DNA of 64,000 nucleotides, taken from positions 124,001-188,000 of the forward strand of contig NIVC01001097.1 of NCBI GenBank assembly GCA_002269645.1, written 5' to 3'. Under the pieces are notes generated by a model, which was given only the letters and a program-made list of their open reading frames with translations, made no database searches and was not told the DNA's origin. Numbering within the stretch: position 1 is the first letter of the stretch; the number at the start of each line of letters is the position of its first letter. The stretch comes from Macrostomum lignano (taxonomy: Eukaryota). Made by a program: the position numbers and the translations under genes. This document shows positions 16,107 through 58,562 of the stretch, in pieces.

Positions 16107-16739
16107 ATGCCAGAGGAAGCAGAAACCATGCCTAAACCGCATATCTATGTGGAGAGAACATTGGCTGTGATTAAACCAGATGCTGTGCATCATGCTGACG
16201 AAATCGAGGACATTATTACTCAAAATGGATTCTCTGTTCTGCAGAAACGGAAGGTGCAACTCACGCCAGAACAAGCCAGTGAATTATATTCCGAGCACTT
16301 CGGAAAAATGTTTTTTCCCAGTTTGATTACGTATATGAGCAGCGGGCCAATCGTTGCCTTGGTCATTGCCAAGGACAAAGCTATCAGCAGCTGGAGGGAG
16401 CTCATCGGTCCCACAAACGCTCTGATTGCGAAGCAGTCTCATCCGGATAGCCTTCGAGCCAAGTATGGCACAGATGACCAACAGAATGCTCTACACGGAA
16501 GCGACAGTTTCACGAGTGCGGAAAAGGAAATTCGCTTTTTCTTTCCAGACAGCATTGTGGAGCCGATTTCAATCGGCGATTCTGCCAAGTCCTACCTTGC
16601 CCGGCATGTCAACCCCACCGTGCTCAAGGGACTTACTGAGCTGTGCAAGAAAAAGCCCAATGATCCAATTGTGTGGCTATCTAATTGGCTACTAGAAAAC
16701 AACCCAAATAAACCAAAGGTTTGTAGTCATTTGATATGA
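16107..16739 (+). CDS. NME5: Nucleoside diphosphate kinase homolog 5 (radial-spoke protein RSPH23) with C-terminal Dpy-30 motif; intronless
   Basis: ERTLAVIKPDAV, YMSSGPIVAL, SLRAKYGTDDQQNALHGSDS (His retained), YLARHVNPTVLKGLTELCKKKPNDPIVWLSNWLLENNPNKP (Dpy-30); 210 aa. Confidence 0.96.
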   Translation: MPEEAETMPKPHIYVERTLAVIKPDAVHHADEIEDIITQNGFSVLQKRKVQLTPEQASELYSEHFGKMFFPSLITYMSSGPIVALVIAKDKAISSWRELIGPTNALIAKQSHPDSLRAKYGTDDQQNALHGSDSFTSAEKEIRFFFPDSIVEPISIGDSAKSYLARHVNPTVLKGLTELCKKKPNDPIVWLSNWLLENNPNKPKVCSHLI

Positions 16740-19300: not shown

Positions 19301-20087
19301 CTGTTGAAGACAGTCGAAGGCCCAGAACGGTGCCTGTCACGACGCCGGTCATAAAGAGGCAGGCGATGACGCCGCCGGCCAGCAGCAGCAGCAGCCGCCG
19401 CCGCCGCCCCATCTGGGGACACCGGCAGCAGCAGCCGCTCTCGTTAATCCTCGGATTGGCAGACGTCGTTGAGCTTGACGTCGGCGCTGCTGGCTGACTT
19501 GGCGGCGGTGGCGCCTCCTCGGCTGGCAGCCAAAGTCGCGGCGGAGCGAGTTCCGCCTCAGCTTCCATGAGCTCCATCAGCGACCTGTCGCCCTGGCCGC
19601 TGAGCAGCAGGCGGTTGTCATAATAATAGTGCACGCTGGGGTCGCCGGCCAGCTCTGGAAGCGGCAGAGGCTGCGGCGGCAGCGCCAGAGGCGGCGGCAC
19701 CACCGAAGCGCCAAATCCCGGCGCCGATCCGAGCAGCGGCCTCGGCGGCCCGATGGCCGGCCGGAATCGGAAGCCGAAGTCGTCGTCGTTTTTGTCCTCC
19801 TCGGCTGCCGCTGCCGCCGCCAGCTGGCCGCCGCTGTTGCTGCTTCGAAAAGGCGTTCGTTTCCGCCGTTGCTTTTTCTTCTGCTTTTTCTCGCTGCCCT
19901 CAGCAGAGCCGCGATTTTCGGCACCAGCCGGCTGAGGAGGCAGCGGCGGCGGCGAGGGGCTTTCGGCAGCGGTTCTGAAGCTGAAGCGGCCGCTGCTGGG
20001 CAGGGTGAGCTGCTCCGCCGCGTCGTGGAAGCTGCTGCCCGGCGCCGTGGAAGCGGCGCCCTCAGTCGGCGCCGCCGGCAGGGCCAT
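19290..20087 (-). CDS. Pro/Ala/Ser-rich 265-aa protein with basic patch, Cys cluster and C-terminal TM helix
   Basis: ATG-initiated, GC-rich, non-repetitive ORF: KKQKKKQRRKR; GCCCRCP; RRRR followed by LLLLLAGGVIACLFMTGVVTGTVLGL. The stop lies in the first units of the adjacent pentanucleotide array. Confidence 0.65.
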   Translation of the reverse strand: MALPAAPTEGAASTAPGSSFHDAAEQLTLPSSGRFSFRTAAESPSPPPLPPQPAGAENRGSAEGSEKKQKKKQRRKRTPFRSSNSGGQLAAAAAAEEDKNDDDFGFRFRPAIGPPRPLLGSAPGFGASVVPPPLALPPQPLPLPELAGDPSVHYYYDNRLLLSGQGDRSLMELMEAEAELAPPRLWLPAEEAPPPPSQPAAPTSSSTTSANPRINESGCCCRCPQMGRRRRLLLLLAGGVIACLFMTGVVTGTVLGLRLSSTDLT

Positions 20088-34849: not shown

Positions 34850-35200
34850 GTAGCATACTACTTCCGGTTCAGTAGTGTACTACTTCCGGTTCAACAGTGT
34901 ACTACTTCCGGTTTAGTAGTGTGCTACTTCCGGCTCAGTAGTGTACTACTTCCGGTTCAATAGTGTACTACTTCCGGTTTAGTAGTGTGCTACTTCCGGC
35001 TCAGTAGTGTACTACTTCCGGTTCAATAGTGTACTACTTCCGGTTTAGTAGTGTGCTACTTCCGGTTCAGTAGTGTACTACTTCCGGTCCAGTATTATAC
35101 TACTTTCGGTTCAATAAGTATACTACTTCCGGTTCAGTAGTATACTACCTCTAATTCACTAGTCCAATGCTTCCGTTTCGGTAGCACGTGCTACTTCCGG
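34850..35200. repeat. 22-bp minisatellite (agtagtgtactacttccggttc)
   Basis: Direct reading. Confidence 0.9.
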
Positions 35201-35355
35201 CTTATTGTTTACAGCGCTTCCGGCAGAATTAGCATACTACTCTATATCCAACACAAATACATTGTTTTCCAATTGAACAGTTAAAAATTCACTATAATTC
35301 ACAGACAGACGCAGCTAAAATGATTAGCAGAGAAGAGTTCACAGCAGGAAGTGTC

Positions 35356-38300
35356 TTAGAAGCTTTCCAGAAAATCCAGCCAGTTGTTCTTCACCCCGGA
35401 TGGCCTCAGCCGGAGCACCAGTTTCCTGATCTCGTCGTACATGAGGATGAGGAAGCCGAAGGGCATTGCGGGCAGCCACCAGGTGAAGCGGAGCGGCTGC
35501 ATCTGCAGGGCCTGGTTCAGGTAGGGCACGTAGACCATCACGATGGCCAGGCCGGTCTCAAACAGCAGCGAGAAGGACAGGAAATGATTCCACATGCCCT
35601 GCTGCAGCAGCGAGTTGCTGCGGGTCTTGCAGGCCAGGAGATTGGCCCACTGCATCACCACAATGCTGGCAAAGAAAGCCGAGTGAGCTGTGTACTCCAG
35701 GCGCTTGCGCTGGTAATAGGACTGCGGGCAGAGCGCAGGGGCTTTGTTTGAGCTTGGATTCTTTTTTTAATACTTCCGGAAAGGTGATAAATTTGGTTAC
35801 AATTTGGTTACAGTTCGCATAGCTGCAGATTCCTACCTTTGGTCCAATGCTTACCCTAAATCTACTCCCGGTTCTTTGTAGTTTCCTGCTTCCACTTTGA
35901 TGTAGTTTCCTACTTCCGGCCCCATGTAGTTTCCTACTTCCGGTTCCATGTAGTTTCCTACTTCCGGTACCATGTAGTTTCCTACTTCCGGTCCCATATA
36001 GTTTCCTACTTCCGGTCCCATAAAGTTTCCTACTTCCGGTCCCATATAGTTTCCTACTTCCGGTCCCATGTAGTTTCCTAATTCGGGTTCTATGTAGTTT
36101 CCTGCTTCCGGTTTCATATAGTTTCCTACTTCCGCTTCCATATAGTTTCCTACTTCCGGTCCCATATAGTTTCCTACTTCCGGTTCTATATAGTTACCTA
36201 TTTCCGGTTGCATATAGTTTTGTGCTTCCGGTTCTGTATAGATGTAGGTGTATATTTTCCAACTTACGGCTCTGTATTTCCCCACTTTCAGCAAAAATTT
36301 CTATCAAAACTGCCTTGTTTCTATTGAGCCTATTGAAAATCCTTAGCCACTTCACACGTACTTAGGGGGTTCAGCAGGTCACTTCCGGTTAGCCTACTTC
36401 ACGGCCGCACTCACCCACTCCTGGCCGTAGCTGTCCTCCAGGTCCACGATGCCCTCGCTGTCCCACACCCGGCGGATGCCGAACAGCCGGCGCGGCCAAA
36501 AGCCGTTCTCGGACAGCACGACGAAGTAGGTGAAGAAGCCGCCGGCCGCCTGCAAGATGCCGATGCGGGCGAAGGCCGAGCTGAGCAGCCGCTCGCTCAC
36601 TAGGCGGTCCCGGCGCGGATTCCTGGGATCGCGGCGCATGATGTCGCTTTCAGCCTCCTCGTAGGCCAGGGAGACGGCCGGGGCCAGGTCTGTGCCGAGG
36701 TCGATGCACAAGATGGTGATAGTGCCCAGGGGCAGCGGGATGCTGACCACCAGGAAGGACAGGAAGCAGATGACCTCGGGCATGTTGGAGGTCAGCGTGT
36801 AGGCGATGGACTTCTTGAGGTTGTCGAACAGGATGCGGCCCTCCTCGATGCCCGTGACGATGGAGGCGAAGTTGTCGTCCGCCAGCACCATGTCGGCGAC
36901 CTGCGGCGGCGGTTGGTATAAACGGCTGAGGCTCAGATCCCCAATCCCTTGACAGGCTCAGATCCCCAATCCCCTGACAGGCTCAGATCCCCAATCCCCT
37001 GACATGCTCAGATCCCAAATCCCCTGACATGCTCAGATCCCCAATCCCCTGACAGGCTCAGATCCCCAATCCCCTGACATGCTCAGATCCCAAATCCAAT
37101 GACAGGCTCAGATCCCAAATCTCCTGACAGGCTCAGATCCCCAATCCTCTGAAGGCTCAGATCCCAAATCTCCTGACAGGCTCAGATCCCCAATCCTCTG
37201 AAGGCTCAGATCCCCAATCCCCTGACAGGCTCAGATCCCCAATCCCATGACAGGCTCAAATCCCCAATCCCCTTACAGGCTCAGATCCCAAATCTTGACA
37301 GGCTCAGATCCCCAATCCCGACAGGCTCAGATCCCCAATCCCCTGACAGGCTCAGATCCCCAATCTCCTGTCAGGCTCAGATCCCCAATCCCCCGACAGG
37401 CTCAGATCCCCAATCCCCTGACAGGCTCACCTGCTTGCTGATGTCGCTGCCCGCCAGGCCCATGGCGATGCCGATGTCCGCCTGCCTGAGCGCCGGCGAG
37501 TCGCTCACGCCGTCGCCAGTGACCGCCACCACGTGACCCAGGCGCTGGCAGCTCTCCACAATGACCAGCTTCTGCTGCGGGGTGGTCCTGGCGAACACGA
37601 GCTCCCGGTGAGTGCGCACCAGCTCGTCCAGCTGGCCGCTGGTCATCTCGGCCAGGTCGGAGCCGTGCACCACGCAGGCGTCGGCCTCCCGCGGGTCCAC
37701 GTGGGACGGGTCGACGCCGCGCTCCAGTGCGATGTCCTCCGCCGTCTTGCTGCGGCTGCTGATGATGTCCACGTGGCGGGCGATGGCCTTCGCCGTGATT
37801 GGGTGGTCGCCCGTCACCATGATGACCTGGAAAGGTGGCGGTGAGATTCGGGTGGGCAGTGGCTGAGATTTGGGTGGGCAGTGACTGAGATTCGGGTGAG
37901 ACAGTGGCTGAGATTCGGATGGGTAGAGACTGAGATTCGGGTGAGACAGTGGCTGAGATTCGGGTGGGCAGTGGCTGAGATTCGGGTGAGCAGTGGCTGA
38001 GATTCGGGTGGGCAGTTACTAAGATTCGGGTGAGACAGTAGCTGAGATTCGGGTGAGACAGTGACTGAGATTCGGGTGGGCAGTGACTGAGATTCGGGTG
38101 GGCAGTGACTGAGATTCGGGTGGGCAGTGACTGAGATTCGGGTGGGCAGTGGCTGAGATTCGGGTGAGACAGTAGCTGAGATTCGGATGAGACAGTGGCT
38201 GAGATTCGGGTGAGACAGTGGCTGAGATTCGGGTGGGCAGTGACTGAGATTCGGGTGGGCAGTGGCTGAGATTCAGGTGGGCAGTGGCTGAGATTCGGGT

Positions 38301-41300
38301 GAGACAGTAGCTGAGATTCGGATGAGACAGTGGCTGAGATTCGGGTGAGACAGTGGCTGAGATTCGGGTGGGCAGTGACTGAGATTCGGGTGAGACAGTG
38401 GCTGAGATTCGGATGAGACAGTGGCTGAGATTCAGGTGGGCAGTAGCTGAGATTAAGGTGGGCAGTGGCTGAGATTCGGGTGGGCAGTGACTGAGATTCG
38501 GTGAGACAGTGGCTGAGATTCGGATGAGACAGTGGCTGAGATTCGGGTGAGACAGTGGTTGAGATTCAGGTGGGCAGTAGCTGAGATTAAGGTGGGCAGT
38601 AGCTGAGATTCGGATGAGACAGTGGCTGAGATTCGGGTGAGACAGTGGCTGAGATTCAGGTGGGCAGTAGCTGAGATTCGGGTGAGACAGTGGCTGAGAT
38701 TCGGGTGAGACAGTGGCTGAGATTCGGATGATACAGTGGCTGAGATTCGGGTGAGACAGTGGCTGAGATTCGGATGAGACAGTGGCTGAGATTCGGGTGA
38801 GACAGTAGCTGAAATTCGGATGAGACAGTGGCTGAGATTCGGGTGAGACAGTGGCTGAGATTCGGGTGAGACAGTGGCTGACATTCGGGTGGACAGTAGC
38901 TGAGACTCGCGAGATTCGCGAAAAGCTAGCACACGCTAGCAACTGCCTACTTATAAGTAGCAAAACACGAGCACGAACAGAAAAGTTCATCCCTGCGCTC
39001 TCCCAGCTCCTCACCTTGATTCCTGCGGAGCGGCACTTCTGCACGGCGTCCGGCACGGAAGCCCTGGGCGGGTCAATCATGGAGATGAGGCCGAGAAACC
39101 GGAGCCCCATGAGCGGGAAGTTCACCTCCTCGGCGTTGAACTCGTATCGCTCGTCGAATTCGTCGGCGGACAGGCGGAGGTCGCAGAAGCCGAGGACCCG
39201 CTCGCCCTGGCCGCCCAGCTCGTTGTAGGCGGCGAGAAAGGAGCGGCGCCACTGGTCGGAGGTCTGCACCTCGCGGCCGTCAACCAGCAGGTGCGAGCAT
39301 CTGTCAAATATGATCTCCGGAGCGCCCTTCATCACCAGTAGGAAGTTGGAGCCGCGCTCCCGCATCACGTGCACGGAGGCCTGGGGCGAGGCGGAGGGGT
39401 GAAGAGGCACTTCCGGTGAATATTCTTGCTTAGAGTGAAAAGGCAATATTAAGTCACTTCCAATCCAATATTCTAGTCACTTCCGGTTTAGAGGGAAAAG
39501 GCAATCCAATAGTCTAGTCACTTCCGGTTTGGAGGGAAAAGGCAATCCAATAGTCTAGTCACTTCCGGTTTGGAGGGAAAAGGCAATCCAATAGTCTAGT
39601 CACTTCCGGTTTAGAGGGAAAAGACAATCCAATAGTCTAGTCACTTCCGGTTTGGAGGGAAAAGGCAATCCAATAGTCTAGTCACTTCCCGCCTCACCTG
39701 GAATTTGTTGGCGCTGCTGAACGGAACCTCGCAAATCTTGGGATGTTGGCGCCGGAACTCCGGCACGCCGCCCACGCACCACTCCATGTACTTGAGCAGC
39801 GCGGACTCGGAAGCGTCGCCAATGCAGTCCCGCTGCAGAATCGGCTTTTCCTCTTCGCCGGCTTTGAACTCCGCCCGGCTGCACAGCATGGCGCACCGGC
39901 TGAGGGCTACCCAGTCAGGGGACTGCGGAGGCGCCGGGGCCGCGCCTTCGCCCATCTGGACCTCCGCGATGCGGCCGCTCTGCCAGGTGTGCGTCACCGT
40001 CATCCGGTTCATTGTCAGCGTGCCTGGCGGGGGCGGCATGTGGTTTTTTAGTTGAACTCAAGTCTGTTGCTAGGCAGTTGCTATGTGGTTTTTTAGGTGA
40101 ACTCAAGTCTGTTACTAGGCAGTTGCTATGTGGTTTTTTAGGTGAACTCAAGTCTGTTGCTAGGCATTTACTATGTGGTTTTTAGGTGAACTCAAGTCTG
40201 TTGCTAGGCGGTTGCTACGCGGTTTTACACCCTCAATAGTCTAGCAATCCCGTTCGCCATCGCTCCCACGCCAGACTCACCGGTCTTGTCCGAGCAGATG
40301 ACGCTGGTGGCGCCCAGAGTTTCCACAGCCTCCAGGTTGCGGACGAAGCAGTTCTTCGAGGCCATGCGCTGGGCGGTGAGGGTCAGGCAGACGGTGACGG
40401 TGGCCAGGAGGCCCTCCGGGATGTTGGCCACGATGATGCCGATGAGGAAGATGATGGAGTCCAGCCAGTCGTACTGCATAGCGAAGGAGGCGATGAAGAA
40501 GGCGGCGCCCATCAGCACGGCGATGACGGTGACGATGTTGATGAAGCGCTCGATTTCCCGGCCGATGGGGGTCTGGCGGGCGTCCAGCCCGGAGGCCAAG
40601 TTGGCGATGCGCCCGATGAGGGTGGCGTCACCAGTGCGGATCACAATGCCGATGCAGTTGCCTGGTGGGGGTGGTGAAATTCCAGCTCAGGCTCATGTGC
40701 TCAATCGCAGCGGGTCTGAAGACAGTGGGATAAAATCCCCATCTCAGGTGCCTCTCTCCCTGAAGCCAGTGGGATAAAATCCCCATCTCAGGTGCACACT
40801 CCCTGAAGCCAGTGGGATAAAATTCCCATCTCAGGTGCTCACTCCCTGAAGCCAGTGGGATAAAATTCCCATCTCAGGTGCTCACTCCCTGAAGCCAGTG
40901 GGATAAAATTCCCATCTCAGGTGCTCACTCCCTGAAGCCAGTGGGATAAAATTCCCATCTCAGGTGCTCACTCTCTGAAGCCAGTGGGATAAAATTCCCA
41001 TCTCAGGTGCTCACTCCCTGAAGCCAGTGGGATAAAATCCCCATCTCAGGTGCACACTCCCTGAAGCCAGTGGGATAAAATTCCCATCTCAGGTGCACAC
41101 TCCCTGAAGCCAGTGGGATGAAATCCCCATTTCAGATGCTCACTCCCAGCGGGTTTGACGCCACAAAGGATAAAATCCCCATTCTTGGGCACTTACCCTC
41201 AACAGCGTAGGTAGAGAAGAACGCCAGGTTCTCTGTCTCCAGCGGGTTCTCGCTGGTGTACTCCCTGGAGCGCACCTGGGGATCGGACTCGCCAGTCAGA

Positions 41301-42100
41301 CAGGAGTTGTCCACCTTGAAGCGCTGCGCATTGATGATGCGGACATCGGCTGGCACCTGGTCACCGGCGTTGATCTCGACGATGTCACCGCGGACGAGTT
41401 TGGAAGTGAGGACGCGGCGCTTCTCGCCGTCGCGCAGCACGAGCGCCTGCTGGGGCAGGCTCTCCTTGAACTTGTCGATGATCTGGGCGGACTGGTGCTC
41501 CTGCGGCGGACGGCGGAGTGACAGATTTGTGACTCTGGGCGCGTCGCACATTCTTTATTTAACACAACTAACTGACTGACTGACTGACTGACTAACTGAC
41601 TGACTGACTGACTGACTGACTGACTGACTGACTGACTAACTGACTGACTAACTGACTGACTGACTGACTGACTGACTGACTGACTGACTGACTGACTGAC
41701 TGACTGACTGACTGACTGACTGACTGACTGACTGACTGACTGACTGACTGACTGACTGACTGACTGACTGACTGACTGACTGACTGACTGACTGACTGAC
41801 TGACTGACTGACTGACTGACTGACTGACTGACTGACTGACTGACTGACTGACTGACTGACTGACTGACTGACTGACTGACTGACTGACTGACTGACTGAC
41901 TGACTGACTGACTGACTGACTGACTGACTGACTGACTGACTGACTGACTGACTGACTGACTGACTGACTGACTGACTGACTGACTGACTGACTGACTGAC
42001 TGACTGACTGACTGGCTGACTGACTGACTGACTGACTGACTGACTGACTGACTGACTGACTGACTGACTGACTGACTGACTGACTGACTGACTGACTGAA

Positions 42101-42135
<35 letters not shown>

Positions 42136-50230: not shown

Positions 50231-53200
50231 CTACTTGGTCTCTTTCTTCTCTTTCTTCTCTTTCTTCTCTTTCTTCTCTTTCTTTTCTTTCTTCTCTTTC
50301 TTCTCTTTCTTCTCTTTCTTTTCTTTCTTCTCTTTCTTCCCTTTCTTCTCTTTCTTCTCTTTCTTCTCTTTCTTCTCTTTCTTGCCTTTCTTCTCTTTCT
50401 TTTCTTTCTTCTCTTTCTTCTCTTTCTTCCCTTTCTTCTCTTTCTTCTCTTTCTTCTCCTTATCGCCCTTCTCGCCCTTCTTCTTGGCCTTGGGCGCCTT
50501 GGAAATCTTGTCGTCAGACAGTTTGATCTCCTTCTGGGCCTGGGCGATCCTGCCATTGACCTTGGCCAGACGCCGTTTCAAGATGTCCTTGTCACTCCTG
50601 CGAGAGAAGTAAGCGATGTAGCTGATGTGCCTGGACACCTTCTCGGCAGTCTCAAGGAGGTCCTTGAAATCTTCGATGCACTTCTCGGCGAGCTTCTGGT
50701 CTCGCTTGGCCCGGGCCTTGTTGGAGGCGACAATGAGCTTGTCGGTCATGCTGTCGGCTTTGCTGGTGGCCTTCTTCAGCTTGACCGCTTCCTTGTCGGC
50801 GAGTTTTCGCGCGTCCTTGCGGCGGATGCGCGGCACGGAGTCGGAGGCCGAGCGGACCAGGCGGCGCAGTGGCCGCATGATGCTCAGGACGATGTCTGAC
50901 ACCTCGGAGGCCTGGCGGACAACCTCCAGCGAGGCTGCGAGAATTTGGTAGTCGGGTTACGTTGGGTTAGGCTTGTAATCTTGCCTGTGTTTAGTGACAG
51001 GGCAGCCGATGGCTTGTAATCTTGCCTGTGTTTAGTGACAGGGCAGCCGATGGCTTGTAATCTTGCCTGTGTTTAGTGACAGGGCAGCCGATGGCTTGTA
51101 ATCTTGCCTGTGTTTAGTGACACGGCAGCCGATGGCTTGTAATCTTGCCTGTGTTTAGTGACAGGGCAGCCGATGGCTTGTAATCTTGCCTGTGTTTAGT
51201 GACAGGGCAGCCGATGGCTTGTAATCTTGCCTGTGTTTAGTGACAGGGCAGCCGATGGCTTGTAATCTTGCCTGTGTTTAGTGACAGGGCAGCCGATGGC
51301 TTGTAATCTTGCCTGTGTTTAGTGACAGGGCAGCCGATGGCTTGTAATCTTGCCTGTGTTTAGTGACAGGGCAGCCGATGGCTTGTAATCTTGCCTGTGT
51401 TTAGTGACACGGCAGCCGATGGCTTGTAATCTTGCCTATGTTTAGTGACACGGCAGCCGATGGCTTGTAATCTTGCCTGTGTTTAGTGACAGGGCAGCCG
51501 ATGGCTTGTAATCTTGCCTGTGTTTAGTGACAGGGCAGCCGATGGCTTGTAATCTTGCCTGTGTTTAGTGACAGGGCAGCCGATGGCTTGTAATCTTGCC
51601 TGTGTTTAGTGACACGGCAGCCGATGGCTTGTAATCTTGCCTGTGTTTAGTGACACGGCAGCCGATAATTTGTACGCAATGAACCTACTATTTGATACGC
51701 TCACGGATCGATAGATTCCAGCTTACGGTATGACATGATTTGTGCGCAATGAACCTACTATTTGATACGCTCACGGATCGATAGATTCCAGCTTACGGTA
51801 TGACATGATTTGTGCGCAATGAACCTACTATTTGATACGCTCACGGATCGATAGATTCCAGCTTACCGTATGGCATGATTTGTGCGCAATGAACCTACTA
51901 TTTGATACGCTCACGGATCGATGGAGTCCAGCTTACCGTATGGCATGATTTGTGCGCAATGAACCTACTATTTGATAAGCTCACGGATCGATAGATTCCA
52001 GCTTACCGTATGGCAGAGTGGAGAAGCTGGATGAGTCAATCTTCAGTTTGGTTTTTCCAACCTTCAGCTTCAATTCCTCCTCTTCCACCAGCGACTTGAG
52101 CTTCTCGATCTTGCTGCTGCGCACCAGGCCGGAGACGAGCAGCTTTCGGGACACGTACAGCTTGCGGATGGTGTAGGGGTGAATCCGCAGCGCCTTGGCA
52201 AGACCGTTCCTCACGGCGCTCAAGAATTTGCTCTTCTGCTTCTGAGAGTCGCCAACAGTGGAAACGTATGAGCCCTTGACGGTGAACTCGAACTGAGCCA
52301 GGTCCTTGGCTGCAGGGGTTTGAAATGGATATTTAAGAAGAACCCTGTCGGTTTTAACTTGTTTTGAGCAAGGAAATCATAAACATTGACTTACGATCAA
52401 CCTTCTTGAAGCCCATCTCTTCCCAGTTGATCTCGACGTTTCGCGACAGCAGATCCCGGATCTTGTCTGCAATTGGTTGTTCAGTTGTAAAGTCCGTTGT
52501 TTGGTCATTATCACCAGAATGAGTAGAAAACCGAGCACTTACTGGTATATTTCGCCTTCATCGAAACCTTGTTAACTTTTCCAACTCTGCAGGTGGCAGA
52601 GATGATGTCATCTACGAACTGCGGCTCGACCAGCTCGCTGAATGTGCTTGTCTTGAAGCTGTGGATGCCGTGGGGCGCCGTTGCAATGCTGTCGAGCTGC
52701 TTTGCCTGGATGTCATCGCCAACTCCGACGGTGATGATTCGGCAGCCCAAGGCTTTGACCTTCGCGGCCTCCTTGATCGGGTCGACCTTGCTGTTGGAGG
52801 CTCCGTCGGTAACCAGAATGACGACACTCTCGGCGCCCTTGCTCTCGCCACCCCGATAGCCGTTGACCTTGTTGAGCAGAAAGCGGCGGAAGGCCTTGAT
52901 GGCGTCTCCGGTGTAGGTGGAGCCTGGAGAATACGCCATCTCCATCACTCGAGTGGTCATGGAGTCCAGGTGGTAGTGGGCGACGTAGTTGAAGATCACC
53001 TTCATTCTCTGCACACTGGAGAACTTGAGCAGAGCCACGTGCGTGTTGTCGCGAGAAACGTCCAGCTTCTTTGCTACGGCAACAATGAAGCGCCGAATGT
53101 GCTCGAAGTTCCTGCCGCGAACGGAGTCAGAGGAGTCGATTAGGAAAGCGACGTCCATGCGCTTGCTGCAGGTGCGCTTGCACTTGGCCGATCCCGTCCA

Positions 53201-56200
53201 CAGAATGTCATCGCACTGGTTGCGGCTGTTGACTCGCTGGGTGTACACCTTGATTGGCACAATCTTGCCATTGCAATGGCCAGTTTCCACCGCCGGCTTG
53301 GGGCAAGAGCAGCGGATCTCCTTGGTGCGTCTGCGTTGGATGCAGCCGCGAGTGAGGCGGTTGAACTCGTAGAAGGTCTCATACATGATCTTGAAGTTGT
53401 TCACACACGGCAGGTATTTGCGGGTGGGCTTTGGGCAGGCTGAAATGCATTCATCAGTGATAGTTTTTTCATTCGACAAGACGGAATGCCATAAGTTGTT
53501 TAAAAACTTACCGCATCTCGCAGTCTTTGTCTTAGTCACTGCTTTGCAATGACCGCCAGATTCGCCACCACTGATCAGCTTGTACTGCAGAATGGTGGTC
53601 TTCCTGTACTGATTCTCGCATTTGCCAATGGTTTTCTTCGGACCGGGGCAGCCACAGCGGACTTTACTGTCCTTGGAGGAGCTTTCGCAAATGCCCTTCT
53701 TTTTATTTAACTTGTAGTAGGTAGTCGTAATTTTTTTAAACATTTTTTCGCACGGACCCGCCTTTGTGTCCGGCTTCGGACACGCGCAGCGCACCTTCTT
53801 AAAGTCCTGCTTCACAACCTTCTTGCAGCCGTAGCCCTTGGGTACGTACTCAACCCGGTGGATGGATTTGTAGTTGCCGACGCAGTCGCCATTGATTAAA
53901 TACGGGTGCGGGCACACTGCAATTTCGGGCAATACAGAGTTAAGCACGCTGGGTTATTAGCTTGAGTAATCCATCAAAGACACTCACGTGGCCTCTCGCA
54001 GTGGAAGGTGAGAACTCGGGCAACCAGGCCGTGGATGTCCTGGAACTCGCGCAGGCCGAAGATGAACACGCGGCCCTCGGGTCCGGCCAGCTTGGCCAGC
54101 TGGGCCCTGTTCCGCTTGGACTGCTCGCCCATGGCGATCGTGACGAAGAAAACGCCAGACCGCCTGACCAGCTTGGACTCGTAGAACTGGTCAACCTCGC
54201 CGTTGGAGTCGGCACCGTCCGTGAGCAGGATGGTGACGTGAGGCACGTCCTCTCGCATGCCGGCGTGCTTCTGCCACATCTTGGTGCGCACCTCGTGCAG
54301 TGCCTCGCCGAGGAAGGTGAGACCGGGCTCGTACTGCATGGCCTCGATCTTCTTCAGGATCTCCTCGTGCGAGTTGTGCTCCCAGCTGTCCAGGTCCATG
54401 ACAATTTTGTTCTTGTGGCTAAAGCGCATCACGCCGATTCGCTGGCGCTCGCCGTTCTTCATGTAGAACTGCTGGACAACGTCGCGAACGAAGTTCTTCA
54501 TGATGTAGAAGTTGTGCTCGGTCACGGTCAGGGACGAGTCCAGCATGAAGATCACGTCGGCCTTCTGAATGCAGACTGAGAATTTTGAGAGAGTTTACCT
54601 TAGATGGATTCTTGCTTGAAAATTGAAAGGAGAAAATGTGCGCTTATTTTCTAGCATAGCCTTGCATCCGCGCCAGTTACTCACTGGGAACGTTCGGGCA
54701 GTCACTGGGGTGCACGCATTTGCCCTTGTGCAGCAGGAAGTACGGCCGGCACTCGCACTGCGGCCGTCGCTCCTTGGGGCACTTGCTGAACAGCACGGGC
54801 TCGTTGCAGGTCCTGGGGCAGCCGGAGCCGCGCACTCGGAAATACTGGTGCCCGGGGCAGGGCGTGGGTTCGTTGCACTTGCCCTTGTAGTAGTACTTCT
54901 TGCCGGTGCACACTGCGGGTAGGCAATGCGGCAGAAAGAAATTCGTCGGGCTTCAAATATTTGCCCGAATTCCACTTGTGTGGATATGAGCTCCACTATT
55001 CATTAAATCTGAAAAAGAGGGTTCTGACACTACTGGGAAGAACTAGTTTGCTTCGGATCCTTACTCTTCACGCAGCGGCCATCCTTGGTCTTCTTGAAGC
55101 CGGGGTCGCAGCCGACTTTGTAACATTTTCGGTCAGAGCGCAGCTTGTAGCCCTTCGGGCACTTTATGGCTGAAATTCGAGAAGTGAAATTCTCGTGAGC
55201 GCTTATGGCTTATCCCAGCTGAGTCTCACCACCTGCACTGGGCCCGCCTGCCTACCTTTCTTGCAGATGTCTCGGAACAGGATCTGGCCTGGAGGGCAGT
55301 ACTTGCGCACCTTCGGCATGCATTTGCCATCGAAGAATTCCGTTTTGGGCGGACAGTCGACTGAATGTTTTTTTTACAGTGGGCGGAGGAATTAAGAAGG
55401 GAATGGAAAAACTGATTGGCATGGATGCGAAGTCAGGCAATCAATTTAATTGAATTCAGTTTAATGCAACAGAATATTTTAAATGTGTTCTGCGAAAAAG
55501 GATTGCAATGATAAATAAAATCTCTGCTTTGCACTGCACTGTGGCAACAAGGCGGATTAAGTTGGGCTACATTTTCTTGAATTGAAAGCAAAGCAGATGC
55601 TGGAACTGCACTGTGAGCAATGGAGTAGCAAAAGGTAGGATTTCGCTTTATTATTGGGGAATACGGCCGCAAGGGGAGATCAATTCGCCTCACCTTTTCT
55701 GCAGGTGCAGGTGGCTTTGTTCAGCGCCAGGCCTTTGCGGCAGCGCATTTTGCATTCGCACCGGCAGTCGCTCTTCTGGTCAAAGTTTCGGCCCGGGCAC
55801 TTCTTCTTGCACTCTACAAGTCAATTAGACAGTTTTGGTGGAGCACTGGAGCTTGATTCAGTCAAGGGGATTTGGGATTAACTTCTTGCGCAAGGCAAGG
55901 TTTTGGAACTCAATATTTACCACAGGCACAGAGCTTAGCGTTGAGTTTCTTTTCTCCTTTGCAGGATTTCTTGCAGACCTTGGCCTTCTTGGGCTTCGAG
56001 GGCACGTGTCGGGGCACGCAGACGCAGCCCTTGACGAGGATCTCCGACTCCTTGCAGCTCTTCCTGCAGTCATCGCTGACGGACACGTTGGGGACGCACT
56101 TGCACGGGACCACCAGCATAAAGCCCTTGGGGCATTTCAGGCTGCACTTGGGTTTCACTGGAATTGAGGGAGCAAAATTCATACTGCTCATGCTGCTCAA

Positions 56201-58562
56201 AGCAAAATACGCGCTGCTCAGTGCTCAAACGACGCTTCTGACTCACATGGGACGCACTCTCGGGCGATCATCTGCAGTCCCTTGCCGCAGGACTTGAAGT
56301 CTTTAACCGAGGCAGCCTTGCCGCCTTCGCACAGGATGTCGGTGATAACCTTGCCGACTTTGCCGAGGTCTTCGAAATCGTTGACAACCGTGACGTACTT
56401 CTTATTGCTGGCCAGCTTCTCCAGGGCGCTCCTGGAGATGCCGGTGCCGATGCCGAGCGCCAAGACGGAGGCGCCCATCTTGCGTAGCTTGTTGGACTCG
56501 GCAACGGGGTTGGCGCGGCCGTTGGCGCGACCGTCGGTAAGAAGCACCACCACCGGCTTGGCCTCGGGGCGGTGGCCGTTCGCCTTCTGGAAGCCCTGCT
56601 CGCGGATCAGCTGGAAAGCCTCACCGGTGACGGTCTTGCCGGATTTGTACCTGAATTTTGCCAGGTAGTTCGTGTGCGACCAATTCGGCATTGGTGAAGT
56701 ACTGGGAGGCTGAATGAGCAACTTTTCCATTTTCAGAGGGTCGCTAATCAAGCTCTAACAGCTTCTTAGTTCACAGCTCAAAAAGCAGACGGTAACCTAT
56801 TTGTAGCTTCTCATGTTGCGAGCGTGCAATGCAAGCCTCGGGCATCTGCCCTCTTTTTATACTAAGGTGTCTGTCTGCTTGTGGTGGTAGGCAGGAGGCA
56901 CAGCTAGACTCAGAGGCTTACTCAAGGTCGTGCAGCAGGAACTGCAGCATGGCCTTGCGTTCCGCGGGCTTTCTCATGGAGTAGTCCTTCAGCTTGATGA
57001 CCATGTCCGCCTTGTCCGAGAAGATCACGACGCCGAAGCGGAAGTTGCTGGATTTGCGCAGCAGTTTGGAGACGATCTCGTGAATGAATTTCGTCACCAC
57101 AGCGAAGTTCCTCCGGCCGACGGAGTGGGACGAGTCCAGTGCGAAGAAAATGTCCGCCTTTTGGCTGCAGCCTGGATTGCGTGGTGGGGCCGGCGTGATT
57201 GTTCTGGGATTTGCAGCAGAGTTCAAAGCGAAAGCCGGCAAGCAGGCAGACAGTCGGACCGGGCCCGGGGCTTGGGGCTTTCCCAGGGATTGACTGGCCA
57301 GGAGGCAATGCCAGAAAGATTAAAAGCAGGCTTTGGCGACGATGCAAAAGCAAGGAAGAATTCCCCAAAGGTTTTTAATTAGTAGTTTATAATGTACTGT
57401 TTAAGGTTGAAAATAACGCTTGGGTCGCAGTAGTGCTCGTATTAAGTCTTGTTTACACTTTTGTCAACAGATGTTTCCTTTAGTGTAGAGGCCTGAACTA
57501 CTTGCAGTAGTGTGGTTCAAAGATGAATTTAAATTAACGAATTACCACGAGAAATTCTAGGCAGTGCATGTACCGAGTTTTTTACATAATTTTGCGACAC
57601 TTACGTAATGCTGAATTTTTTTTGCAAAAAAGTTGAAGATGCATTGTTAGAGACAGTCAATAATTTTGGGGTTTCACATCGCACAGACAGACAGGTAGGT
57701 GCCTAGCACATTGTCTATGGCTCTGATGGATAGGTAGTGTCTAGCACACTGTCTATGGCTCTGATGGATAGGTAGTGTCTAGCACACTGTCTATGGCTCT
57801 GATGGACAGGTGGTGTCTAGCACACTGTCTATGGCTCTGATGGATAGGTAGTGTCTAGCACACTGTCTATGGCTCTGATGGATAGGTAGTGTCTAGCACA
57901 CTGTCTATGGCTCTGATGGACAGGTAGTGTCTAGCACACTGTCTATGGCTCTGATGGACAGGTGGTGTCTAGCACACTGTCTATGGCTCTGATGGACAGG
58001 TGGTGTCTAGCACACTGTCTATGGATCTGATGGACAGGTAGCAGTTTAAACGTCCCTGCATTGGAAATTGTTAGTTGCATCCTGAGTCCTTTCAGCGGCT
58101 CCCTGAGGCGAACTCATAGATACGAGCTAAGCGTACAAGGATAGGAAAAGCGGAAGCGACAAGCGGAGCATGCAACCAGGTTGGACCGCTGCAGCGCAGT
58201 TGCAGACCGGTCATTGAAAGCAATAGCAAATTTCTGCACAAATAAAAATATCGGTACTTACTTTTACCTGAGAATTGAGGTGGTATGCACGTAGTTAGGC
58301 GTGTTATAAGTGTGTCAATAGTCAGGTTAATTAGTCAAAATGGCAAAAACCAAGGCGTGACTGAGAAGGGCCACTGACTCAATTTCTGTTCTAGTGCAGA
58401 CTTTGTGAGGCTGTAGGCCTTCGGAAAGCCGAGTGGCTACTCACCATCCTTGCTGATCTCAGTCAGCGTGCTGAGCACATCGCTGTCAGCGGCTGCAACA
58501 TTGCCTTGGAGCACCAGCGGCAGCAGCAGCAGCGCCGGGAACAGTGACATCAGGCGCCGCAT
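50231..58562 (-). CDS. Large secreted multidomain protein (~1511 aa): SP-VWA1-CXCXC/Cys-rich-TIL-VWA2-5x Cys repeats-VWA3-SEA-like-helical-KEK tail; 14 exons
   Basis: Exons 58562-58445, 57171-56922, 56650-56247, 56157-55921, 55813-55694, 55360-55256, 55169-55065, 54912-54685, 54575-53988, 53916-53512, 53439-52543, 52466-52395, 52309-52007, 50934-50231. All GT/AG; phase 1 except one phase 2; 4536 nt in total. Signal MRRLMSLFPALLLLPLVLQGNVAA; VWA motifs ADIFFALDSSHS..LLTDG, ADVIFMLDSSLT..LLTDG, MDVAFLIDSSDS..LVTDG. Confidence 0.85.
50970..51665. repeat. 41-bp intronic minisatellite
   Basis: Unit ggcttgtaatcttgcctgtgtttagtgacagggcagccgat. Confidence 0.95.
51670..52015. repeat. 70-bp tandem repeat that copies an exon end plus its 5' splice site
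   Basis: GCTTAC (GTAAGC on the minus strand) at 51721, 51791, 51861, 51931, 52001. Confidence 0.92.
57690..58040. repeat. 38-bp intronic minisatellite
   Basis: Unit ggtagtgtctagcacactgtctatggctctgatggata. Confidence 0.93.

Follow-up and report, generated by a model that had tools for sequence, protein, structure and literature searches.

A divergent Na+/K+-ATPase alpha paralogue of Macrostomum lignano with Asn at the site-III aspartate position, an altered C-terminus and a changed GDGVND motif

Here we describe an extra Na+/K+-ATPase alpha gene of the flatworm Macrostomum lignano, encoded on the minus strand of a 64,000-nucleotide stretch of contig NIVC01001097.1 (positions 124,001 to 188,000; this whole stretch is called the window below, and all coordinates are counted from its first letter, with those of the gene given in reading order). 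The gene is a real, transcribed and selectively maintained additional sodium-pump copy. By homology, domain architecture, phylogeny and the ligands of ion sites I and II, its predicted product belongs to the Na+/K+-ATPase alpha family, as a sequence-only reading of the window had proposed; among the family hallmarks tested, the predicted protein misses three, namely the GDGVND hinge motif, the aspartate of the third Na+ site (Asp926 of pig alpha1) and the terminal tyrosine pair. By analogy with mutant pumps, a weakened third Na+ site is plausible for this protein, and its stoichiometry cannot be deduced from the sequence.

To build the gene model, we translated the minus strand in three frames and joined, at introns, the open pieces resembling Na+/K+-ATPase alpha. 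Before a tiny upstream exon was added, the joined pieces formed an uninterrupted coding sequence of 2955 nucleotides; the full model has nine coding exons and a product of 1024 amino acids. The coding part of the upstream exon (exon 0, 43732-43721) reads ATG GAT GAC GGG (MDDG), is followed by a GTAAGT donor and agrees with the N-termini of the models P0124, P0125 and P0126. Exon 1 (42616-42179), lying between the acceptor CACCACAG and a GTGAGT donor, encodes the N-terminus and the membrane segments M1-M2 (RDNSFRQAV...GGFSYYQ); exon 2 (41500-41197) encodes the A domain including LTGES, and exon 3 (40661-40281) M3-M4 together with VANIPEGL (E327) and ICSDKTG (D369). The N domain spans exon 4 (40023-39698), which opens with TLTMNRMTV..., and exon 5 (39380-39015; KGAPE, GERVLGF), and is followed by the P domain in exon 6 (37826-37431) and by M5-M7 in exon 7 (36900-36415), at whose end DSYGQEW is found. 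The last exon, exon 8 (35721-35356), is preceded by the acceptor ...CTGCCCGCAG and encodes, in one piece, M8-M10 and the C-terminal tail up to the stop codon TAA (35358-35356). All eight introns are consensus, with a pyrimidine-rich CAG acceptor and a GTGAGT-type donor (CAG/GTGAGT type throughout).

The deduced protein is 100% identical to the M. lignano GenBank entries PAA72344.1 and PAA72810.1 (BOX15_Mlig017217g1) and PAA87570.1 (g3), models that derive from a genome-guided RNA-seq assembly and not from ab initio prediction (PMC5730564); a full-text literature search found no paper naming Mlig017217. It matches pig alpha1 (PDB 3wgu) over residues 1-972 with E = 0 and 1344 bits, as well as 2zxe, 8d3u and others with E = 0, and the Pfam domains recorded for the product are PF00690, PF00122, PF13246, PF00702 and PF00689. 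With canonical animal alpha subunits (pig alpha1; M. lignano Mlig021528, P0003) the paralogue shares DKTGT, TGES, MVTGD and SYGQ, present here as ICSDKTGTLT, CLTGES, IMVTGDHP and, for the beta-subunit binding motif of the M7-M8 loop, DSYGQEW; apart from the hinge motif, the residues for ATP binding and phosphorylation are kept, as read by eye in the translation against pig alpha1 residues. The sequence-only reading had called the site I/II ligands intact, and indeed six of six (E327, S775, N776, E779, D804 and D808) are identical to those of pig alpha1.

Within M8, the letters CAG TGG GCC AAT CTC CTG encode QWANLL, with AAT at 35643-35641, and the constant +36 offset of the 3wgu alignment in this region aligns the Asn with pig Asp926, which is the acidic ligand of Na+ site III; the substitution reported earlier from the letters alone thus stands, and it is found in all three copies of the gene described below. 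Other residues of site III and of the docking surface for the tail (Y771, T772, T774, Q923, W924, C930, E954, K766 and R933) are unchanged. A change of Arg933, the partner of the terminal Tyr, to Ser was considered and rejected, as 3wgu numbering keeps R933 and puts the Ser at the variable R934. On a side note, M8 of the canonical flatworm pumps (P0003, P0004 and P0005 of M. lignano; P0006 of Trichobilharzia) reads QWTDL and not QWADL, and the divergent paralogue has Ala at the QW-x position, like non-flatworm pumps.

The C-terminal tail (35397-35359), homologous to G--NWLERETYY of the canonical gene, ends in ...WLDFLESF in place of ...WLERETYY and has two extra residues ahead of the Trp. Beyond the Trp there are seven more residues, the same number as in W-VEKETYY, which bears out the earlier observation of a non-YY terminus of unchanged length; K766 and R933 are kept, but the docking motif (E/K)(T/S)YY is missing at the C-terminus. 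That this tail and the Asn are artefacts, produced by overlooking a splice from GTGAAG (35394-35389) to a YY-bearing exon, by a sequencing error at the Asn codon or by decay of a pseudogene, we regard as barely credible. It is true that GGG/GTGAAG resembles a splice donor, that vertebrate pump genes have an intron just ahead of the Trp, and that an open reading frame (ORF) piece encoding WTSELEVVYY and a stop lies at 35166-35134. However, in the canonical M. lignano gene (P0003, locus L002) the last intron likewise comes directly after YGQEW, and the terminal exon runs unbroken through ...PPGNWLERETYY to the stop codon with no intron ahead of the Trp; the tail of the paralogue aligns with the canonical tail residue for residue from the Trp onward, and the nucleotides AACTGGCTGGA are common to both. 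Given the same last intron and the unbroken canonical final exon, the odd tail is therefore homologous to the canonical one, and GTG AAG is a two-codon coding insertion and no splice donor.

Likewise, all GenBank models, which rest on RNA-seq, and two UniProt models read through to ...ESF. In the three minus-strand frames scanned from 35400 down to 1, the piece at 35166-35134 is the only one downstream that ends in YY and a stop; it sits in the first units of a 22-base-pair (bp) minisatellite, beginning with the first unit, and it is preceded by a purine-rich ...ACGGAAG with no pyrimidine-rich CAG acceptor such as the gene's eight introns have, and by our own arithmetic a scan of 35 kb should turn up about 1.6 matches to YY plus stop by chance alone. 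The separate KETYY exon that the sequence-only reading wished to see excluded was accordingly rejected, and the read-through tail is the true C-terminus. The 3' flank is 279/280 identical between gene copies and so is of no help on the separate-exon question. In its own right, the single difference in the 280 bases after the stop (35080-35355 against 19571-19850 of the copy L001), compared with about 2% at synonymous sites of the coding sequence, suggests either a constrained 3' untranslated region or local gene conversion.

The assembly holds three distinct copies of the paralogue (that of the window, also L004, together with L001 and L003), a number consistent with the recent genome duplication described for M. 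lignano (PMC5730564). Among their coding sequences 29 sites vary (28 of these at third codon positions), every change is synonymous and the encoded proteins are identical; with some 27% of random changes expected to be synonymous, such a pattern has P of about 2e-17 under neutrality. All ORFs and splice sites are intact in the copies, and the five longest aligned blocks (exon and intron mixed) are 91-99% identical in nucleotides. The Asn codon is AAT in the window copy and AAC in both others, which excludes a base-calling error and marks Asn as a maintained state. This three-copy comparison led us to reject the sequencing-error and pseudogene readings, and the pattern of substitution points firmly to strong purifying selection acting on the paralogue now.

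The third missing hallmark, overlooked in the sequence-only reading, lies in the catalytic P domain. The codon AGC (37505-37503, inside exon 6) places Ser at pig Asn713, in the hinge motif GDGVND, so the longer pattern GDGVND(S/A)PAL is not found, with D710 and D714 kept; this Ser, encoded by AGC, is common to all three gene copies. At the same position Asn is present in 115/115 full-length protostome pumps, the sample used for conservation and for the tree below, and in 140/146 diverse representatives, and Ser in none. Further departures from canonical alpha are Cys for Pro782 in M5 (TGC at 36768-36766, inside exon 7), by which PEITPFL becomes PEVICFL at a site that is Pro in 115/115 protostome pumps and 131/142 representatives, and Met for Gln376, directly after DKTGTLT (codon at 40012-40010, in exon 4). 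The lysine cluster near the N-terminus is gone as well: the corresponding region (42560-42520) is without the lysine-rich run of canonical pumps (MADEKKNDKKAGKAKLDDLKQELDMDEHR in P0003).

Among the 115 protostome pumps, the nearest to the paralogue are the canonical M. lignano genes at 65-67% identity (67% to P0003), with other flatworms, molluscs and annelids at 61-65%. A phylogeny of the paralogue had been suggested as a check, and in our neighbour-joining tree (distance methods only) the paralogue is sister to the canonical M. lignano alphas within the flatworm clade, in 186/200 bootstraps. Its terminal branch measures 0.235 against a median of 0.034 (about 7x), and it departs from the consensus at 72/491 invariant or near-invariant columns (about 15%). 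Together, tree and branch length portray the gene as a duplicate of the macrostomid lineage that evolved at several times the rate of its canonical sisters and has since become frozen. Full-length and 283-amino-acid searches returned no match above 67% identity outside M. lignano, that is, no orthologue, and a 121-amino-acid search gave three matches and no orthologue, a search that was non-exhaustive since the paralogue itself was absent from its matches. Other Macrostomum species are barely represented in the databases, so a missing orthologue means little.

How unusual the changes are depends on the breadth of the comparison. In the 229 animal Na,K-ATPase-like sequences whose M8 motif could be recognised (roughly at least 60% identity), Asp926 is kept in 229/229 and the ending TYY is found in 218. 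The tail is a striking place of change, with four of the 72 deviations, plus a Tyr-to-Ser change, falling within the last six residues (about 3e-4 by our own binomial estimate). In a wider set of 127 diverse representatives of 50%-identity clusters, 35-62% identical to the paralogue, two separate alignments give Asp in 44 and His in 20 at the Asp926 position in both, and Asn in 34 or 36; for the 50 representatives whose sites I and II are fully pump-like, the counts are 35 Asp and 8 Asn. A YY terminus accompanies Asp in 22/37 of these 50%-identity representatives and Asn in 1/32 (Fisher p = 3e-7, uncorrected for phylogeny). Named Asn-bearing relatives are mostly protists (Acrasis, Percolomonas, Paratrimastix). 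Asn together with a tail lacking YY is thus a combination that has occurred repeatedly in nature across the wider family, and in the paralogue it has arisen anew inside the true animal pump clade with Trp924 and the rest of the site-III scaffold retained.

Two other animals came to our attention in the same comparison. A protein of the bdelloid rotifer Didymodactylos carnosus (P0199/P0403, CAF1043580.1, CAF1030376.1) reads QWTVL and has lost the site-III Asp, with a Lys at the N776 position (YTLSSKIPE) as in the alpha2KK pump of Artemia; a fragment from the freshwater sponge Ephydatia muelleri (Em0006g213a, P0186) reads QWVNL and has lost the Asp too. The gene models of both look fragmentary or fused.

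What the Asn and the altered tail may do is best gauged from mutant pumps. In agreement with the claim of the sequence-only reading that both Asp926 and the C-terminus are needed for Na+ affinity at site III, D923N/D926N lowers Na+ affinity more than 100-fold, specifically at site III and with K+ affinity untouched (PMC9463140), and C-terminal alterations make Na+ affinity drastically lower and the inward leak higher (PMC4914835). In Xenopus D935N pumps, the outward Na+/K+ current persists at about 1/3 to 1/4 of normal turnover and does not respond to external Na+, and the inward proton current is reduced to 12% (PMC3971657). For the hinge residue, a 2005 meeting abstract reports that SERCA N706S is phosphorylated normally from ATP and forms E1P at a normal rate, that both of its major conformational transitions are slow and phosphorylation from inorganic phosphate does not occur, and that it neither transports Ca2+ nor has ATPase activity (abstract 56 in PMC2268108). 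The human ATP1A3 allele D923N (rapid-onset dystonia parkinsonism), the engineered D926N/D935N pumps and the delta-YY mutants are the closest analogues in effect, carrying the same Asp change or the loss of YY; they are deleterious single changes in otherwise normal pumps, whereas the paralogue combines both, is naturally selected, bears N713S and many other changes besides, and still ends in an aromatic residue (Phe).

By this analogy, the paralogue would still assemble as a P-type pump alpha subunit and be phosphorylated from ATP. Its third Na+ site would be weakened, so that the apparent affinity for Na+ should fall strongly and external Na+ or voltage should inhibit the pump little. Since Asn is unable to relay protons, the inward proton leak to be expected from a loosened tail by itself should be absent. 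The N713S change would further slow the E1P-to-E2P and E2-to-E1 steps, and the net prediction is a slow pump variant of low Na+ affinity. We place roughly even confidence in this combination of a weakened third site, lowered apparent Na+ affinity, little inhibition by external Na+ or voltage, absence of leak and slowed cycle. A bolder version, in which a natural animal pump has given up the Na+-exclusive third site by replacing Asp926 and remodelling the tyrosine plug, and moves fewer Na+ per cycle without a proton leak, strikes us as doubtful. If it were true, the paralogue would represent a two-site route distinct from the H+/K+ pumps and from Artemia alpha2KK, and a second pump mode for a euryhaline flatworm; the parallel Asp replacements in sponge and bdelloid rotifer would then be signs of a class of animal pumps with two Na+ sites that recurs and has so far gone unrecognised.

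Several observations weigh against a weakened-site pump. The other site-III contributors (Y771, T774, Q923, W924, E954 and C930) are all kept, and the chain still closes with an aromatic residue bearing a free carboxylate; the effect on site III may therefore be mild, and the side-chain oxygen of Asn could still coordinate Na+. With about 15% of near-invariant columns changed anyway, D926N alone is statistically unremarkable and may lack special meaning; the co-variation of Asp with YY carries whatever shared ancestry contributes to it, and the orthologue searches offer no evidence that the Asn and the tail are conserved beyond M. lignano. If the SERCA N706S result transfers, the paralogue may be unable to complete a transport cycle at all. 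Finally, the literature and the supplements of M. lignano papers yielded no functional, expression, localisation, tissue or salinity data.

The sequence-only reading had gone further and proposed an altered stoichiometry (electroneutral, 2Na:2K or H+-coupled) for an osmoregulatory or epithelial pump; the version of this idea in which site III is abolished and the pump serves osmoregulation in the epithelium or protonephridia is, in our judgement, unlikely. The D926N change, the YY loss and the intact sites I and II speak in its favour, and P2C pumps with an unused Na+ site III do exist: in the gastric and non-gastric H+/K+-ATPases (ATP4A, ATP12A) the Asp is present but silenced by Arg949 and Ile943, with Arg949 neutralising the equivalent Asp in the non-gastric pump, and Lys occupies the S775 position (PMC9463140). 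A natural precedent, and the one animal pump of naturally reduced stoichiometry to have been characterised, is alpha2KK of Artemia franciscana, a 2Na:1K pump (PDB 8k1l) with Asn-to-Lys changes at N324 in M4 and N776 in M5 (PMC10756188); like the flatworm paralogue, it is an additional alpha isoform confined to its lineage, with changed residues at the ion sites, in an animal that meets changing salinity, and 8k1l is among the top structural matches of the paralogue (1250 bits). M. lignano, for its part, is intertidal and has been studied under salinity stress (PMC5043416). Yet the substitutions do not imply such a stoichiometry. D935N mutant pumps remain electrogenic, and the network of Trp924, Cys930, Gln923, Tyr771 and Glu954 that builds site III is intact. 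We rejected a reading as an H+/K+ pump, for which Lys at S775, Ile at W924 and, in the non-gastric type, Arg at C930 would be expected; the paralogue has Ser775, Trp924 and Cys930, as Na+ pumps do. A reading of the alpha2KK type was rejected as well, as VANIPEG and TSNMPE keep both Asn residues that are Lys in Artemia (N324K, N776K); alpha2KK alters sites I and II and keeps every site-III residue including the Asp, and the flatworm paralogue does the opposite. The tissue or salinity expression data that would connect the pump to osmoregulation are likewise among those not found in the M. lignano literature and supplements. Distant P2C-like ATPases of protists (such as Acrasis kona KAL0491254.1, Percolomonas, Paratrimastix) and the sporadic animal paralogues (Em0006g213a, CAF1043580.1) have Asn or Val at Asp926 and usually a non-YY aromatic C-terminus; these are, however, only 35-61% identical to the paralogue, most are without Trp924, and none has Ser at Asn713.

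A serious rival, though one that we think improbable on balance, is that N713S has crippled the protein into a pump-like molecule that cycles barely or not at all and is kept as a phosphorylatable sensor or scaffold, as a partner for the beta subunit or as a regulated leak. The invariance of Asn713 among protostome pumps, the absence of Ser there in diverse relatives, the inactivity of SERCA N706S and 72 unique changes at near-invariant positions (P782C in M5 included) would all fit such a protein, and the strong purifying selection shows that some function is retained. Against this, every site I/II ligand is kept, as are the other catalytic and nucleotide-binding motifs read by eye in the translation, and such retention is hard to explain if transport has been lost. 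The SERCA result concerns another P2 pump and was published as a meeting abstract, and other P-domain changes of the paralogue could compensate. At the other extreme, the gene might encode an ordinary 3Na:2K isoform of housekeeping type whose substitutions tune affinity only, as in the vertebrate alpha isoforms. Such an isoform would agree with a full-length alignment at 63-67% identity to canonical pumps, with most site-III contributors kept and with the aromatic terminal residue, but 0/229 animal pumps are changed at Asp926 and 218 of them have TYY as their last residues, vertebrate pumps with these changes lose Na+ affinity drastically, and the branch is about 7x the median length; we consider it quite unlikely.

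Asp926 and the C-terminal tyrosines are central to the 3Na:2K stoichiometry and are sites of mutation in human neurological disease. Their joint alteration in a paralogue under selection amounts to a natural experiment on whether a Na+-pump-like scaffold can do without its third Na+ site, and the protein could show whether Asn stops the leak of a loosened tail and whether a pump tolerates Ser at the conserved Asn of GDGVND. The catalytic-site change N713S could make the paralogue more interesting or simply inactive; should it turn out to be an ordinary or an inactive isoform, it would be a mere curiosity, one duplicate that evolves fast within a neopolyploid genome. Transgenesis and RNA interference are available in M. 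lignano, and the physiological role of the paralogue is therefore directly testable.

Beyond the coding exons, the window is rich in tandem repeats. Tandem Repeats Finder, run over positions 1-64000, returned 48 rows, corresponding to somewhat fewer distinct arrays, as overlapping periods repeat. Seven of the eight pump introns hold an array, each built on a different unit (period 4-45 bp), and several of the units share a CCGGAAGT core; examples lie at 35862-36241, 36929-37429, 37842-38909, 39461-39689, 40038-40226, 40716-41147 and 41567-42133. Such arrays give long spurious ORFs on both strands. Elsewhere in the window, a 210-amino-acid uninterrupted ORF on the plus strand (16107-16739) encodes a nucleoside diphosphate kinase domain and, after it, a Dpy-30 motif, an NME5-like architecture. 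On the minus strand, three successive ORFs (52511-53947, 53974-54555 and 56218-56751) each carry a von Willebrand factor type A domain, with Cys-rich repeats ahead of the first; they are probably exons of one large gene or else a tandem cluster of genes with this domain. A 223-amino-acid ORF on the same strand (50231-50902), with no Pfam match, ends in a long (KEKKE)n repeat.

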